DNA of 64,000 nt from Hyphochytrium catenoides (GCA_900088475.1 FLMG01004655.1:5424-69423), one strand, 5' to 3'. Numbered from the stretch's first letter, positions 43,166-55,704 are shown. Notes: generated by a model not told the origin, from the sequence alone. Made by a program: numbers and translations.

Positions 43166-46100
43166 TCACTTAGTCCTCCGTTCACCTTCTCCCCCCTGGC
43201 CATCTACATTCTCAGCTTGATTTACTCCAGCCAGCTCCAATACATAATCAGGAATGTCAGGTCGCTGTTTGACAGACGTGTCCAGTACACTCTCGCAATA
43301 TCGCCTCAGGCTATGTCGCAGCTCTTCTCCTCCTTCCTCAAGTAGTTCAGATAGCTGCATTGGAACACATTTGGTTTTAGCCGCTTTATCTGTACGTTGC
43401 TCCACCCTTCCCGACCCACCTTGTCTACAGGTAGCTTTGTAAGTGCGATGCACCCCAGTGGCTGGATCATCTGCAGGATCTAAGTTAGATTGAGCTTACG
43501 GAATGCTTAAATAGCGAGCTTGAGAGAACTCTACGAAATGCTGAAGTACCAGCGAGAGGAGATCGACATCTTGCAAGTGTTGCCCGTAAAGTATACCTGA
43601 AAGCACTTTTTGACTCCAGTCCACAACTCTACGCTTTGCTCCCATACTTGACTGTCCACTAGCTGTGATAGAGCTTGTGCGGCGAAGTTCTAAGCAAGAC
43701 ATCATCAGCTGAACTCAAGACGAACCAAAAAGGTGGACATGCAAACCTTCAGCTTTGGCATGATACTAATCGCAGCCATGACCGTACTCAGAGTCATTCT
43801 AGGAATCGGATTCAGACCAAGCATTTCCTTGATGGCGGCTTCAATAACGTGCCTGCGTGACAAGCGCCCATAACCGTCAAGAGACTGTAGATGCACGCAC
43901 CTCCCATGCTCTCGGCTTTCCCCCATACCTGTTAAATACGTGAGGATGGTCAAAGCAGACTTTTCTAGCCTCTACGACATCACGTAAAGGGGCTTCTATT
44001 CGATGGAGTAGCACAAGGAGCTCCGCAGCCGACAGAGACCCGTTTTGATCCACCAAACGTGAAAAGCCGACCCAAACAATATCAGGCGACAAGGCTATCA
44101 CCGAAGGCAGTATCCTTTCAAGCTGAAGAAATAGTGGGAAACATCATTGACGCTGCCATCGGGGCCTTGGGGGGTCACGACTACCTACCTCTTCCATCTC
44201 GAAAGCATGGAGCACTGGCACCAGCAACCTCAGTTTAGTCGGGTCTTCCATGTATCTTTCTCTCAGAAGATCAACCTGTTAAGGTGTGGCCCCACTGTTT
44301 AGAACCAAGCTGTGGTCGGAAAATCAAGTAGTAGGGCGCACCATCTTCTGTTCTGGCTTTCGGCCGGACTGGGAAAGAATCTCCACGATCCTGAACACCA
44401 TGGGCAACCCCTCTTCAGCGAAATGTATCACTCGTTTTAGCACATCTGCGGCTCCGTACGCCTTATCTAAAGTACGTATGAGCCGCTCTATCTCCTTAAC
44501 GAAAGCTGCTTGAACTATTTCATTGGTCTTTGTGTAAACCTGCACTCAGATGATAAGGCTGAGAATCTTTGTTTTAAAGCTGAGTAGCCTTACCTCGGCC
44601 AGCCCCGTCAATAAATCGACATTTTTTGTGCAGACTGCCAGGTAGAGGTCTAGTCTAGCTTTTACCTCCTCATGGGTCGTCGGCATACCGTCATATAGTC
44701 TACTGGGTGAGCAGGCATCTAAACTTTCTCGATAAGCAAGAGCTTCGCTCTGCAAAACCTGAACTCCATTCTTTACCATTCCAGATTCCACTGAAGGTCA
44801 AACCTTAGTTTAAACCAAGCATGTCGGCTGTCGTCATAATCGAAAAGGCATACCTTCAACCTCGGATATCATGACGCTCTTCGGCTCGGAAGGCGTTTGG
44901 TCTGGAGGTAATGCAATGGACGTAATCGCTCCTCCCTCCACCATGGAGCTCAGAAGCGCGACAGCGGCACGTTCAATGCTTGGGACAATCTCACTTTTCT
45001 TGAACAGCTGATTAGCGATACAGCGGATCGACTTCTCACGCACTTCCTCAGCTGGAGCAGATGCGTAGAGTAACAACAAGCGAAGAGCTGCATCGCTTGC
45101 AAGGGGCCGCTGGAAGACTATATCCCTCAACGTCAAAATACCGAGATTAGTACCTTCTGGGTCTTCAACATACTCCTTCACCACCTCAAAGACTCCGGGT
45201 ATAACCTGAGGCAGCTGACTGATGATATCTCTAAACAGCTTCTTATCTGCTGCTTGCGACGGATCTAAGGTGCCCTTCAGCTTGCGCAAGAATCTGTTGA
45301 GCACCCTGCTGTACCTATCTAGCGTTGCTGACGGGCCTTCCGAAGATTGAATGACAAGATGTCGACTCTGATTTGCAAACTCTTGATAGAGCAGAGAGAG
45401 CGCTAATTTGTACCGTCCATGGGCATCTGCAACAATATGCGTAATAAGCTTGTCTGTGACAGGTGAAATCCAAGTTGTGCTAAGCGCTGGATCTTTGGAG
45501 CTTTCTATATCAGCTGAGTCAATTGAAGCCAGCCATTCATTGCATGCCATACGAGAGATGACAGCGTCGCGAAGGGCTGAACGCCCACCGACGATGGCTC
45601 CCTTCTCTGTCCGTCCCCTACAAATCCGGTGAAAAGCCCATTGGGCCATCTTCTTACAAACTTCAGGCTTCATTTCATTCGGCACCTTAACGACTACCTG
45701 GTTGTCATTATTCAAACCCACCATGCCCTNNNNNNNNNGAGAGAGCTTGTCTCAACCGACTCGCAACCATCTGTGCCTCCTGAGACGATAAGTCGGAGAA
45801 GTTTGTGAGACGTTACAGCGACTGTTAGACCTTGCCTTAAGTATACCTGAGGGGAGAAGATGAAGGTACTCTCAGAAGGGGGCGCGGTCCTCAGCCGAGG
45901 GTCCCTTGGACGGCCGTCACTTCCAGGCTCTGCGGACCCAATAGTTTCCAGAATTTGCTCTACTGGACGAGGACGAGTGTGACGGAGGCGGTCTTCGGGT
46001 GGTGGGCCAGGAATGTTGTGCATGTTGGCAAGAATAAGGTCTATCACACCGTCCAACGGTAGGGTCCTGATGTCTTGGTCAATACGAAGGGTGTTCGGTG

Positions 46101-47290
46101 AGGGCGGGTATGCCATGGAAGCGGGGTCCAGTCTCTGCCGCTTGCTAGCACGTTCGTCAATAATGATGCGCTCAGCGTAACCCGACATCCGTAGAGCATA
46201 GTGTTTAGCTCTCTCAGCTTGGTCATTGACCCCGTGTTCCCGAAGAATGGCAACTAGCAGCTCAGCGTGTTCCAGCATCGCTGGAGAGCGCAAAAGCTTC
46301 AAGAGGTAGCATCTGGTGGATAAAGCTAAGCTCTTCTGTTGAGAAGGTGACAGCTTTGTAAAGTCACGAAGTCGTTTGAGAACCTCACCCAACACCGGGC
46401 ATAATCGAGGTGCTGTGTAGGGCCTATGTGCAGCTATCAAACTAACCGAGTTAACGGCAATGTTGAGCTGGCGATGACTAAATGAGATCCTATGACCTCC
46501 ACCTGTTGAGGGCCCAACAAGGTAACGATGAAAAGGGGCAAGTAAATTCTCCGTCACAGTCCAAGGGCCTAACAGTCGCAGGACATCTTCAATATTGCTT
46601 ACCTGATGCGGTCAGATCGCCGAGAAACTTCAACAAATCTTCTCCTTCTCGCTTCAACGCAACACGGTCAATAACAGCGTTTGACAGCGGTATGTCTGCA
46701 ACGGTGAACTGATCGGGAATGGGCTTAGCTCTGGCCCTAGGGCCACGCGCAACTCGTGTGGGTTCGGAATAAATCAGGATTAACATGCAGTAGAGTTTTA
46801 CGGCATGGCATCGCACAACCTCGTGGTCAGAGTGTATGTAGTTAAGAAGCTTTTGCTTGACAAGTTGCAGACGCTCCCATAAGTCTTTTGCTGGAATGCT
46901 CATCCCGACGCTCATCGCTAAACTGGACGCTGGGCCCTGATGAGCTGCTACCATCTTCACAGCTCGCTTATAGAGAGCATTATTGATCTGAAAAACCTTC
47001 AAGATAACTCCCTCATTTTCATCCTCGCTCAAATGAATCATAGAGTCGAGCAATGATGGTAAATAGATTGTATCCCGGCGAACCGCATCCTCCAGGAACC
47101 CCAAAACCAAGCGTTTGATAGCCGGATAGCCATCTTCGAATTGGAACTCCAACACTCCAGGAACGGCGTAAGGTAGCAACGAAGAATCACGGGTAAGAGC
47201 AATATCACGGACTGCCTCAAGGTACCGGAGTTTATCAGCTTCCAAGGGGTTTACTCTGGCGCTAACAAGGTTCTGGTTGATGACCTCCAT
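43166..47290 (-). CDS. SYMPK: Symplekin/Pta1, mRNA 3'-end processing scaffold (multi-exon, contains an N gap)
   Basis: N-terminal HEAT region KLRYLEAVRDIALTRDSSLL...VLEFQ...IKRLVLGFLEDA. Middle LGILTLRDIVFQRP...EVREKSIR. C-terminal LSAAELLVLLHRI and NFAAQALSQLVDSQVWEQSVELWTGVKKC typical of symplekin. The last exon/stop is uncertain. Confidence 0.85.
45730..45738. other. Assembly gap (9 N) inside symplekin coding sequence
   Basis: Run of N in the sequence. Confidence 0.99.
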
Positions 47291-50158: not shown

Positions 50159-53126
50159 GCTCCCTACAGCAACTGCCAAATCGTAATCACTTCACTCACG
50201 TTCAGAGGGTCCAGATTATGTGCTAAGCTGCTGTTTGCACCGTCCACGGATTGTCAACAATGCCGTGAGGAGAAGACTCTTTCTCCGGAGCGTTTAGTAC
50301 TTGTACCTGTAGGATGAGGACATGAACTCCGAGCTGAAGCACTTCTCCTTCGTAAGGCAAAGGGCGTTGCCCTGCAATACAACTGTTCTTGATTAGACCA
50401 TATTCAGAGAAAGCTGAAAGGGATCGGACGAACTATGTTAGCAGAAGCCTGTACGCCTCTTTCCCCTTCCAGTTCCAGACAAGAACATGCCGAAACGCTT
50501 TGCACTGTACTCTGTATACTACTGTGTACAGCTTATGACTGTTCCAGAACATGACGATACTATAAAGAGATCTGCACGCTCTCGTCTGTGATAACCGTTA
50601 ACGAATAGATGGACAAGTACTCAAACGTACAAGCTTACCTACATCAACAACAAGCTTTAATGAATTATAGGAGGCGGAGAACCTCCGAAATACAGCAAGA
50701 GAGTCATCATCACAATCCATGATGGGGAAAAAGTGGATGATGATAATAGGACGACAAGGCAGACTAATCATGAGATGCCGAGTCTCCTCTTTCTATTCCT
50801 GAGCTGAAGAATTCAAGGCTTAGTTCTTGTGTCTTCTCTTCATAGGTTTATTTACTACCCGTCTGTCTACGACGACCCATTCTTTCTTTTTCCCTTACTA
50901 TTTCTCTTCTCTGTATATTTCGAAGTAATCATCAGGTCAGAAGAGGATACACAGCATTGTCCTACTGCTACAGGACAATGGTACAAGGCAGTAACGATTG
51001 GAGGTCCGTCATGCCATGAAGAGAAGAAGAATAGTGGCGAGACTACAGCCGTAGTAGTTGGTGGTAGCAGCAGCGATGCATTCGTACTACTGATGTCTGA
51101 TTCTTTCTACCCTCATAGATTCTCCCCCCTTCTTCGCTAGTAGTGTTGTTAGCTTCTCCTTTGTTGTTAGCTTTCGGCCGCAACTTAAGTGTTGAGTAGT
51201 TGGAAGTCTATGTCCCGATCAGCGACCTTCTCGTGAAAAGGGAGGGAGTCTATGATGGGCAGAACTTGTGGTTGTTGGAAGTAGATATTATCAAACACCA
51301 CAGAAGAGTTGGCTTGGAAGTTCATATAATAGTAGGTGGTGCAGCAGGAGAATATTAAGAAAAGGACGAACATACTCCTGTTGTCACTTGTGCATTTCCG
51401 TTCTGCTTCAGCACGAAGCACGAAAGAAAGTAGAGTTAGACAACAAAGACGCCGCCGTAATTGGTGGTCAATGGAGTAATAGTGCTGACGGTTCCTGGTC
51501 GACGAGTAACACTATTTTCAGGCTACTGCGTTCCTTTTTCCATACTTAACAAAAACGTTCATTATTAGTCCCCGTCTTTCGCAGCTAATGATATTCTTCT
51601 AACAATATACCTATCGGTGGGTATGTTGTTGCTGGTGGTGCCTACTATCGGTGTGTTGCTCCGCCGCAAGCGGCAACAACAAATAGCACCACTATGGGAA
51701 CTAGTATGACCAACAAAGAAGGAGAGGCCGGTTTCATTATCTCCTGACGGCTCGAAGGAAGAAGTCATCAAAACCTGAGGCGAGGTTGACTGATAGTCGA
51801 CGGCGGAAGGAAAAGGAACCAAGAGGAAAAACAAGGATATAATGTCCACCTTCATCATCACTGGAGGCCCCACCACCCATACAGCCGTCCTCTCAAATCA
51901 TAGACTAACCATAGAAGAACTACTACCTGTAAGCACCCAAATAAAGATGATCAGAAGATGAAACCCAAGAAACACTACAGCTGGCCACAGTACTGGGGGA
52001 GTTCTGCAACAACACATTTGTCATGCTGAACTTTCGAATCTATCTCGGAGAAGCCTTGAATCCTACAGCTGTACTTCTGTACAGAGTTTTGTCAGATTCG
52101 TATTTTTACCCTTCTTAGTCCTCCTACTAAATTCTGTGCTTAGTATCCTCGAGTCCTAATATTAGTTCCTAGGAAGTCAGCTGAAAGCTTTGGCGTGAGC
52201 AGCTAAGCCGTCCTGTCTGGGCCTACAGCCCCGCTTGTCTTTGTCAAGGAGGACGACCGGCAGTGTTCTTTTTGCCACACAAAGTCGTCCTTGACTTCTT
52301 ATTGGCGATCCTCGTTTGACGAGAGGAACTGCGAGACAGAGACGCCCGTTTTGGGTCTAGTGTCTGTGTGCTGGTTCGGCGGAGGCAACAGCGGGCAGGG
52401 TCTCCTCTATCTCAAGCACAACTCCGAGCGAAGGGGCGCTATCCAAAAGGTGACGACATCCTACTACCTTTCCTGTGGCTCTGAAGAGCGGTTCGTCAGT
52501 GAGTGCAAAGCCTTTGGGCATCTCTCGTTCTCGTCTGGGAGGATGCCCAATATTGCATTTTCAGACCACAAGGATTTCTAAGCTGTGGAACTTGTCGTAA
52601 GAGTGGGGAAGCTTCGAAACCACTGGACTTGTAAGCACCTTAGTAACAATTGCCCTTCTTGCTGCCCCTTTTAACAGTCTGGAAAATAAGAAGAGCACTG
52701 CTGCTTCGTGGGTTTAGGACAAGCTGGTGCTGCTATTTTCATCCGAGGATGATATTAATGGCCGCATTCCTGGCCTTATTGGCCGCGGAAAAGCCACGTC
52801 AAGCGATAGAATCGCTATTTGCCGAGATATCGGTCAGTGCTAAAGATGCAGTTACCGTCGTCAAGTTGCTTTTTTCAGGCATGAAATGACTGCTTTTTGT
52901 CAATGTTGTTCTGGCACCGTCTCTTACACATTTATCGACACATGATAAACTAACTGGTGACTCTCGCCTCATCCCACTGCTTTTTCGTTCTCTTGCATCT
53001 CATCTGAAGATTTTCCTGTACGACAGTTTTTGGTAAGTGAACTAGAGGGGAAGCCAACAAAGCTCAAAAAGAGCACACTGACTAACACCGCTTAATATTC
53101 ACCTCCACACGGCTTGCCTCCATATC

Positions 53127-55520
53127 ATGGCGCTTCTTCTATGCAGGCCTCTGCTGGGAATTGTTGGCTTTCTGTCGATCCATTCTCTCGTCGCGATTCT
53201 GATAGACCATAAAGCGATGTTTCAAATGTTCATCAACTTTGGACCTCCGGAGGAGCAGGTGTATACAGTATACTTCATCTATCTCAGAAATCACTACCAG
53301 TATGTTGTCGCTTACATGACTCTCTCTCTCTCTCTCTGCCTTACGCCTCCCCTTCGTAAAGGATCTACTTCACAAGTCTTCTATACGCACCACACTGTTT
53401 CGCTGTGCCAACTGGATTATCTCCTGGATTTTCGTGGGGTCCCTCGTTTCTGTTGTGAACAGTGGCAATCACGCTGCCCTTATGATTATATCGGGACCCA
53501 CTATAAGCCTGAGCTATAAGCAGAACAGCCACCTTTCTTCGGCTAGGGCGGACGTCATAATATGCTTTCTTACCATGGTGCGTCAATGGTTCAAAAGATC
53601 AAACTGGGTTGATGAACACGCATTGCTTTCAAAAGTAATCATTATTTCCGTCCATTACCTCTCACTGCTTCTTTCACAGTCATACCTTTTGGGGCTATTC
53701 TCCATGAACACGCTAGCTCGGGCCCTGCAGAGCAGACAGGTGAGTTTTCTTATTCATGGCATTCAAAACTGACACGGAAATAACTTCTATCTCGCCCATG
53801 AGACAGCCCAGACCTCGAGCACTGGTTGGTATTCCATCCGCGTATGTCGTCGTCCTTTGCAGTATTATTGCGAACTTGGACGGGCCGGTCCATCTTAAGG
53901 CTGGAGTCATCTTCCTGACACTCTCGATCCTTACTACGTGCTACATGCATGTTCTCCTTAATACGAAGACAAAGGGCCCTCAAGCTACTCTTCAGGTGAG
54001 AAAGCTTACTGGACTTGGCAACAACAGCAACCTTTGGCACTCACTACTGCTGATGGTGAAGCAGAAAAGGCACTTGAACTTGTCCTACTCGGACCTTAAC
54101 TCTAGTAGATGCCCGGCTAACCCTACAAGCCGGGTTTACATAGTGAAAGGAGATGTGATGCCTGCAGACCTCTCCACCTGGCAAAGTATCTGTTTCACGT
54201 CCCAGAAGCTAGTAGACATGGTTCTGAACATGCCCTACCAGCTAACGAAAGACACGATCTCCCAAACAGCCGTTAGTGCTGTGGTTTTGGTTTGCTCCTT
54301 GAAGGTTAGTACAACGCTAGTAGTAGGAACGCCGGTTGGAATATCTGAGACGTCCCTACCATTTCTATCAGGCCGCGATTCCCATGTCTGGCTCTCTTCT
54401 GATGGGATCTCTCACCGCGTTCGCAATTAATACGCTGCGAAAGAGCATGACAGGAACGGAGCCTAAGCCGAATCTGAGTTCTGCAATGGAAGCTAGAAGG
54501 CTAGCAACCTACCCGCCGCCTTATCCTAATGGATGGTACAAGCTTGCGGACTCGGCCGATATCAAGCCTCAGGAGCTCAAGCGGGTGATTGCTTTTGAAC
54601 GCAAGTTCGTGATTTTCCGAGGCGAGAACGGGATCGTATCAGTTATCGATGCGTACTGCCCGCATTTAGGAGCTGATATTAGCGCCGGAGGGAAAGTGAT
54701 TGGAAACTCCATTGAATGTCCCTTTCATCAGTGGCAGTTTGGGCAGGATGGCCGCTGTACAAAGATTCCATATTCAGGCTCTATTCCCACGTCGGCGACA
54801 GTGAAGATGTGGCCTTCTATTGAGTACTACGGTAACATTTGCGTCTACTTTGACGCCGAGAAGAGGAAAAGTCCGCCGTACTACCCTCCATTTATCCCAG
54901 ATTTGGATGGTGGTCATTTCGTCTACCGTGGACAGCTGGACAGACGCATCAACATGCACTTGATGGAGTTCGTAGAAAACTCTGCTGACTTCATGCACTT
55001 CGACCCCTTGCATGGCGCCATGCATTTGCCCTTCACATCCATTCCCATTCCGGGTGTAAAGATCAAACACGAGGCTGGATGGAAACCCGATGACAAGGAC
55101 AGGCATATCGCTTATTTTTTTGATAAAGCAGAGCTCTGTGTTAACGGCAAGGTAGTTCCAAGGACCAAGGCTGAGGCTATGATCACTTTGATCGGCCCCG
55201 CCGGGTTGACCTACTTCAACTTCAAGACGCCACTGGGCAAGATCGTGCTCTTTCACACACATACCCCCATTGCACCTTCCCAGCAACGAGTATCATTCCG
55301 CTGGTACGCTGATAAAGCCGTTCCTCGCTTTCTGGTTTGGTACGTGGTTGGAAACTGGATAAGTCAGTGGCAGATGGATCTGATGGTCTGGGAGAACAAA
55401 AGGTATACTCTCAAACCCACATTGGCTAAGGGGGATGGGCCGATGTTTCAGATGCGACGCTGGTTCAAACAGTTCTACTCTGAGAGTAGTGAAACCATTC
55501 ATAAGCAACTGGATTGGTAG
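53127..55520 (+). CDS. Neverland/DAF-36-type Rieske [2Fe-2S] oxygenase (cholesterol 7-desaturase-like) with a predicted multi-pass N-terminal membrane extension
   Basis: YPPPYPNGWY, Rieske motif DAYCPHLGA...ECPFHQWQF (CxH...CxxH), mononuclear Fe site ENSADFMHFDPLH, QWQMDLMVWENK, GDGPMFQMRRWFKQFYSE and terminal LDW*. These match Neverland/DAF-36. Upstream exons from 53127 join in frame via intron 54272-54371 (hand-predicted). The catalytic part is far more certain than the extension. Confidence 0.85.
53320..53337 (+). repeat. (CT)9 microsatellite in the first intron of the Rieske desaturase gene
   Basis: Read directly. Confidence 0.85.
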
Positions 55521-55644: not shown

Positions 55645-55704
55645 TTTAATGAAAACAATGGGTGAAAACCTGACTTTAATGAAAACAATGGGTGAAAACC
55701 TGAC
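55645..55704 (+). repeat. Perfect 30-bp tandem duplication (TTTAATGAAAACAATGGGTGAAAACCTGAC x2)
   Basis: Two identical adjacent copies at 55645-55674 and 55675-55704, read directly. Confidence 0.95.

Follow-up and report, generated by a model that had tools for sequence, protein, structure and literature searches.

A candidate six-exon gene of Hyphochytrium catenoides for a Neverland/DAF-36-type Rieske oxygenase preceded by a polytopic membrane module

The DNA considered here is a 64,000-nucleotide (nt) stretch of the genome of Hyphochytrium catenoides (GCA_900088475.1, FLMG01004655.1:5424-69423), below called the window. The interval 53127-55520 on its plus strand fits a single six-exon gene, with a product of 650 residues when the open stretches are joined via canonical GT-AG sites. 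The product is probably an integral-membrane Rieske oxygenase from the Neverland/DAF-36 family, in which a polytopic N-terminal module of about 270 residues would act as a membrane-embedded extension of the anchor and as a route for the sterol. Neverland and DAF-36 make provitamin D3 from cholesterol and open the synthesis of steroid hormones in insects and nematodes. The structure of the gene, the homology of its upstream exons to other proteins and the exclusive association of the module with enzymes of this type are what the analysis shows; the transcript, the enzymatic activity and the role of the module are deduced. The window gene is one member of a small, unnamed family of fusions already visible in databases.

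The terminal open reading frame (ORF) encoding the Rieske domain occupies positions 54336-55520 (plus strand) and is preceded by shorter open stretches in other frames. One of these, a frame of 224 codons at 53756-54430, overlaps the Rieske ORF and can be joined to it only through a 100-nt intron, 54272-54371. The donor GT of this intron is at 54272 and its acceptor AG ends at 54371, and splicing shifts the frame into the Rieske ORF with the junction QTA|AAIPM. All five introns are of the GT-AG type and lie between codons, their lengths being 103, 102, 67, 69 and 100 nt. The initial annotation had described several upstream exons that together encode roughly 200-250 residues with multiple hydrophobic helices, spliced in frame to the desaturase. 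The helices and the exact QTA|AAIPM splice stand, whereas the length proved slightly greater, as about 268 residues precede the last exon.

Exon 1 (53127-53258, plus strand as all others; residues 1-44) starts at the first ATG after an in-frame stop and encodes helix 1 with the motif L-I-D-x3-M-x2-M-F (D27, M34, F35). It ends at the donor CAG|GTGTAT; the candidate donors 53267, 53303 and 53306 yielded lower scores than 53258 and were rejected. Exon 2 (53362-53577, residues 45-116) encodes helix 2, in which the motif is N-W-x2-S (N61, W62, S65). Helix 3 is split between the end of this exon, which supplies its first half, and exon 3 (53680-53739, residues 117-136), which completes it with the motif S-Y-L-x-G-x-F (Y118, L119, F123). 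Helices 4 and 5 are encoded by exon 4 (53807-53995, residues 137-199), which lies within the 224-codon frame; its I-P-S-A-Y and N-L-D correspond to the family columns V-P-P-x-Y-Y and N/H-L/S-D/T. Exon 5 (54065-54271, residues 200-268) contains a hydrophilic loop and a weakened form of the family motif R-Q-x2-Y-D-x2-V-Y-x2-P (Q246, D250, P256). Finally, exon 6 (54372-55520, residues 269-650 and the stop codon) begins after the acceptor TATCAG|GCC and encodes the anchor helix, the Rieske domain and the KshA_C-type catalytic domain.

A Kyte-Doolittle scan of the 650-residue model places hydrophobic helices at approximately residues 8-26, 59-77, 107-125, 142-160, 169-187 and 269-287. The last of these is the usual anchor helix of the family, 30 residues before Y-P-P-P-Y-P-N-G-W-Y, and five more helices lie upstream of it. 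When codon usage was learned from the remaining ORFs of the window, the resulting test selected the right frame in the long exons; it did not separate exons from introns and was therefore uninformative.

A longer 5' end, consisting of 52749-52832 and a 23-nt micro-exon 53010-53032 spliced to 53147 via the good donors GTCAGT and GTAAGT, was considered and rejected, as it adds only about 5 bits. In a six-frame scan of the window the profile of the first helix does not single out the region 52749-53032. The ATG-started stretch at 52749 opens with M-I-L-M-A-A-F-L-A-L-L-A-A-E-K, which by eye resembles the first short helix of the family (M-F-R-L-L-S-I-A-I-L-L-F-A-I-E-K in the relative P0136). A (CT)9 run at 53320-53337 forms the pyrimidine tract of intron 1.

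The upstream exons are assigned to the gene by homology. A first profile of the module was built from the N-terminal extensions of homologues only, with the window excluded and the 45 residues that immediately precede the Rieske domain trimmed. The spliced window N-terminus scores 49.5 bits against this profile, the maximum over 1000 shuffles being 9.0 and the score of the reversed sequence 0.2; thus the similarity of the upstream exons is more than chance. Against an enlarged family profile, also built without the window, the spliced peptide scores 60.8 bits over profile positions 44-198, and exons 1 and 2 taken alone score 14.3 and 21.2 bits, respectively. The splicing of intron 2 (53578-53679, GTGCGT...CAG) is backed by homology as well, since its retention lowers the score from 60.8 to 40.9 bits. 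In pairwise comparison the window module matches that of P0132, a relative of 683 residues, with an expectation value (E) of 9e-12. The whole 650-residue model aligns by tblastn in one stretch with the contig of P0132 (L007; residues 9-644, 36% identity, 5e-147) and with that of P0006 (L001; residues 13-643, 36% identity).

These data bear on the possibility that the region yields two products, a desaturase with a single anchor starting from M273 (position 54384), and upstream exons that form a separate gene or a minor isoform from an alternative promoter. Indeed, the methionine at 54384 opens a protein of 378 residues with the typical single-anchor layout. However, the upstream frame reaches its overlap with the Rieske ORF without a stop codon of its own, and the canonical 100-nt intron joins both in frame. 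Moreover, the relatives show the same fusion as one ORF or one transcript-sized contig, and among the matches with a visible downstream region the module is never seen apart from the Rieske part. We therefore consider two products improbable, and a single transcript across 53127-55520 is the more natural prediction from the sequence.

A set of 430 homologues of the Rieske part consists mostly of proteins with N-termini of 10-90 residues and includes several of 520-650 residues with multi-helix N-termini. When the modules of P0006 and P0132 served as queries in word-index searches, only these queries themselves came back; the module is too divergent for this tool, and thus an exhaustive profile search was needed. 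A feature search of the ESM Atlas with the P0006 module gave no usable match. The exhaustive HMMER search of 1.84 billion representative proteins produced 23 matches at E <= 0.001, 15 of them at E <= 1e-10. Every match long enough to show the downstream region has a Rieske domain there, in most cases with KshA_C as well. The short matches whose contigs were examined, P0122 and P0124, each correspond to a first exon that has Rieske exons after it. On the contigs L004, L005 and L006 the Rieske-coding exons lie within a few hundred bases after the module ORF, and on these and L002, all of them genomic, the module is directly upstream of the Rieske part. P0130 is encoded by one uninterrupted ORF of 702 codons on a 37.5-kb metagenome contig, where its neighbours are eukaryotic (among them a USP9X-like protease, a COMM-domain protein and Rpb5). 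P0006, P0008 and P0132 each take up the whole of a contig of about 2 kb, which is transcript-sized. The sole carrier with a species name is Corallochytrium limacisporum (P0030; EukProt name Clim_evm5s108). Thus, as far as the matches show a downstream region, the module is found only in front of Neverland-type Rieske enzymes.

The initial annotation had proposed an extra multi-pass membrane domain fused to the desaturase. Five helices do precede the anchor, and most homologues have only a short N-terminus with one or two helices; however, the fusion is not a peculiarity of the Hyphochytrium genome, since at least 23 protein clusters, Corallochytrium among them, have this architecture in conserved form. 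Against the module profile, no other homologue has an N-terminus that reaches 8 bits. These include P0027 and P0046, which have long hydrophobic N-termini and were rejected as family members. Their N-termini are Ala-rich, multi-helix and unlike the module, and different membrane extensions may have been added to the Neverland-type enzyme more than once. Two environmental contigs that are unrelated to each other carry a short-form fusion gene with one and the same divergent neighbour, a protein with the Nrf1_DNA-bind domain (L004, 905-1756, and L006, 81-836, both on the minus strand); these contigs are probably from related organisms with conserved gene order.

Eukaryotic proteins named cholesterol 7-desaturase share 45-55% identity with the catalytic part of the window protein. 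In a maximum-likelihood tree of 46 sequences the latter falls inside a eukaryote-type clade (95/93) with one rotifer and two Naegleria proteins of that name. This clade is set apart from eight homologues chosen as the bacterial outgroup, of which two have NCBI names in Myxococcales/Myxococcota, and the outgroup set is defined only by that same 95/93 branch. Inside the eukaryote-type clade the sister of the window is a group that contains P0132 and the ten-member group of long forms (87/78, moderate support). The nearest ESM Atlas clusters by features are those of arthropod nvd (0.96). These results support the assignment of the predicted enzyme to the Neverland/DAF-36 type rather than to the KshA type, in agreement with the initial annotation, and the Rieske phylogeny that it called for groups the window with eukaryotic cholesterol 7-desaturases, KshA being compared by similarity and not in the tree. 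Of solved structures the best relative is KshA (4qdc), a distant match aligned in part (3e-36), and a search of the PDB yielded no structure of a membrane-bound family member. The identification as a KshA-type 3-ketosteroid 9-alpha-hydroxylase was rejected, since KshA is a distant match and the window protein, predicted to be membrane-bound, has its place in the eukaryote-type branch of the cholesterol 7-desaturase-like set. Short N-termini are found in about 70 of the 109 closest homologues, and those of them that have names are for the most part bacterial (Myxococcota, Dadabacteria, Proteobacteria). These homologues share 41-49% identity with the window enzyme, and several bear the name cholesterol 7-desaturase in the annotation of the Joint Genome Institute.

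The terminal ORF matches the Pfam domains Rieske (PF00355, 4.7e-21) and KshA_C (PF19298, 1.2e-21). The ligands of the Rieske [2Fe-2S] cluster, read from the sequence and aligned to those of KshA, are C364-x-H366-x17-C384-x2-H387 (54657-54728, plus strand), that is, C364-P-H366, 17 residues, and C384-P-F-H387. The mononuclear iron motif E470-x3-D474-x2-H477-x4-H482 (54975-55013, plus strand), within the segment ENSADFMHFDPLH at residues 470-482, is aligned to the same motif of KshA. The segment Q-M-D-L-M-V-W-E-N-K (residues 602-611; 55371-55400, plus strand) aligns with Q-D-V-E-I-W-K of KshA, so that D604 falls opposite the Asp of the latter. We take D604 to be the third iron ligand, as is presumably the aligned Asp in the KshA structure. 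PPPYPNGWY occupies residues 316-324, GDGP residues 622-625 and the terminal LDW residues 648-650. All the motifs on which the initial annotation based an intact oxygenase with a Rieske cluster and a mononuclear iron are in place, the third reading DLMVWENK. The motifs defined for the Neverland family, C-x-H-x16-17-C-x2-H for the Rieske cluster and E/D-x3-D-x2-H-x4-H for the non-haem iron (PMC7609953), both describe the window protein.

By homology, cholesterol C7-desaturase activity is predicted for the window enzyme. A different oxygenation of a sterol or another lipid, with the name of C7-desaturase carried over from animals to this branch of protists, is unlikely. In its favour, the identity to animal-type sequences is only about 45%, many bacterial members of the family are of unknown function, and the branch leading to the window is long (0.77 changes per column). 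However, all metal ligands and the terminal motifs of the family are retained, and the protein is placed inside the eukaryotic clade with animal and Naegleria sequences. Family members from animals, Tetrahymena and Capsaspora are reported as C7-desaturases, as summarised in PMC4967820.

The module family has a number of strongly conserved columns. Firstly, an Asp at the end of helix 1 is followed by M-F, and helix 2 starts with N-W-x2-S. Secondly, S-x2-Y-L-x2-F-F is conserved in helix 3. Finally, P-P precedes helix 4, and Q-x2-Y-D-x2-V-Y-x2-P precedes helix 6. The window retains D27, M34, F35, N61, W62, S65, Y118, L119, F123, P146, Q246, D250 and P256. There is no conserved His or Cys column in the alignment of the module family. 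Six relatives and three window exons match no Pfam family at E up to 10.

The fold check of the N-terminal part that the initial annotation had suggested was run on the module of P0132 (residues 1-349), the closest relative. The AlphaFold2 model is all-helical, with a mean predicted local distance difference test score (pLDDT) of 75.5 and a predicted template modelling score (pTM) of 0.69. No known fold was clearly matched. With this model Foldseek gave against the PDB a best E of 0.28, with bundles of G-protein-coupled receptors at a template modelling (TM) score of about 0.23, and in the ESM Atlas fold search all TM-scores were below 0.4. A comparison by VIA-align with 48,161 chains gave designed helical proteins as the best matches (Z 9.1), and according to the tool such scores are uninformative for helical bundles. 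The EXPERA domain (sterol isomerase EBP, TMEM97) was rejected as an identity of the module, with no Pfam match at E up to 10 and no appearance among the top matches of the three fold searches. No description of a polytopic N-terminal module in this enzyme family was found in the literature, a weak negative, as the search did not include the original Neverland and Des7 papers.

The main alternative to a role in anchoring and sterol access is regulation by sterol. By analogy with HMG-CoA reductase or SCAP, the module might be a sensor or stability domain that tunes the level or location of the enzyme. A polytopic domain of about five helices that precedes a sterol enzyme and has polar residues conserved inside its helices would fit this role. 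On the other hand, the sterol-sensing domain (NPC1, Patched, SCAP, HMGCR) has no Pfam match at E up to 10, none of these four proteins is among the best structural matches, and the domain was rejected as an identity of the module. These negative results speak against membership in that family and not against an analogous role. We consider such regulation rather unlikely.

The initial annotation had also listed electron supply among the possible functions of the module. Rieske oxygenases require an external electron donor, and the module might itself be such a redox partner, built into the protein, or might serve as a platform on which cytochrome b5 or a reductase docks. However, it has no conserved His or Cys column and matches no cofactor-binding family, and no fold of the b561, ferric-reductase or b5-like type was among its matches. 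Since the module lacks conserved ligands of metal or haem, a built-in redox function is unlikely judging by the alignment, and electron supply is disfavoured. These points do not reach the docking of a separate partner; supply and docking taken together are nevertheless highly improbable.

Our preferred reading, a single membrane enzyme whose module extends the anchor, suggests the following mechanism. The C-terminal 330 residues would form the complete catalytic unit, in which the Rieske cluster would take electrons from an external partner and pass them to the mononuclear iron. The latter, by homology, would desaturate a delta-5 sterol at C7-C8. The module would be a membrane-embedded extension of the usual single anchor that may hold the enzyme, probably a trimer, flat on an endomembrane, and it may form or guard the exit route of the sterol from the bilayer to the active site. 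The module helices contain invariant polar residues, namely an Asp in helix 1, the pair Asn-Trp in helix 2, Ser/Tyr in helix 3 and Tyr-Asp ahead of helix 6, a set that suits a specific site of binding or packing more than a passive anchor. We tentatively propose that the module anchors the oligomer and gives the sterol access from the bilayer, a role that we regard as possible, though somewhat short of probable.

Several points weigh against this reading. The single transcript is deduced from the genomic sequence and not from RNA. Intron 4 (53996-54064, 69 nt) is in frame, has no stop and falls in a variable loop, where homology does not decide its removal, and the acceptor of intron 1 is ambiguous, exon 2 starting either at 53362 or at the in-frame alternative 53377. 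The window copy of the sixth helix of the family is weakly hydrophobic, so that the number of passes, and hence the side of the membrane on which the catalytic domain lies, is ambiguous. The fold model is that of the relative P0132, built from 32 alignment rows, 6 of which are fragments of window exons. The enzyme tree contained no functionally characterised Nvd or DAF-36 and no KshA. Lastly, the role of the module is deduced solely from its conservation pattern and position.

In the enzyme tree at least four branches bear carriers of the module: that of the window and the long forms, that of P0004 and P0008, that of P0030 and that of P0067. Proteins with short N-termini are interleaved with these carriers. 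Forcing all carriers together costs 49.5 log-likelihood units (approximately unbiased test, p = 0.002), a result to be read with the facts that a quick tree had already been seen before the group was named and that some of the short neighbours are probably truncated at the 5' end; a single exclusive clade of carriers is rejected by this test. Taken at face value, the pattern would mean that the module is old and was lost repeatedly, or else that it was transferred repeatedly. Since the carriers lie on at least four branches and include Corallochytrium, a close unicellular relative of animals, one possibility is that the module is an old membrane domain of the ancestral eukaryotic Neverland-type enzyme. 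It would then be a device for sterol extraction or gating, reduced to a single anchor in animals, Naegleria and slime moulds. This scenario we regard as doubtful.

To our knowledge, it is not known how a membrane-anchored Neverland-type Rieske enzyme extracts sterol from the membrane, nor how it is anchored. A conserved 270-residue module in several protist lineages is a natural handle on this question, as it allows the full-length form to be compared directly with a truncated one. The data suggest that in animals the short form may have arisen by reduction of the long one. The module also adds to the list of sterol-handling parts an unnamed domain, for which neither a Pfam entry nor a structural match was found.

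As for the surroundings of the gene, there is no long ORF on either strand in the flanks at 49-53 kb and 55.5-58.5 kb, and the minus strand beneath the gene contains short ORFs only. A perfect direct duplication of 30 nt (two copies, 100% match) is located at 55645-55704, about 125 nt past the stop codon, in the presumed 3' untranslated region. The translation of a minus-strand ORF at 45712-46557 holds a run of X, corresponding to an assembly gap (N run) near 45.7 kb (about 45712-45730).

Comparison with known systems places the window protein as follows. It shares with Neverland, DAF-36 and Des7 of Tetrahymena the Rieske and KshA_C-type domains, the two metal motifs, an anchor helix placed immediately ahead of the Rieske domain and the terminal motifs G-D-G-P...F-Y-S-E...L-D-W, and it lies in the same eukaryotic clade. 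In contrast to these enzymes, it has about 270 additional N-terminal residues with five extra hydrophobic helices, whereas in the sequences compared from animals, Naegleria and Physarum no more than 45-85 residues, with a single helix, precede the Rieske domain. KshA (PDB 2zyl, 4qdc) is the closest solved structure, and its two-domain layout and the positions of its metal ligands match those of the window protein. However, this actinobacterial enzyme, a hydroxylase with the dedicated reductase KshB, has no N-terminal membrane part, and 4qdc is aligned only over residues 40-214 and 329-369. The EXPERA proteins EBP and TMEM97 resemble the module only in the general idea of a small, polytopic, helical membrane domain related to sterols. 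The closest counterparts are the long forms P0132, P0126, P0130, P0006 and P0030, which have the same layout of module, anchor and Rieske oxygenase. They share with the window the Asp of helix 1, M-F, N-W-x2-S, S-x2-Y-L-x2-F-F, P-P and Q-x2-Y-D...P. Compared with them, the window protein lacks the first short helix of the family and about 30 residues after it, its sixth helix is degenerate, and its gene has five introns, whereas that of P0130 has none.

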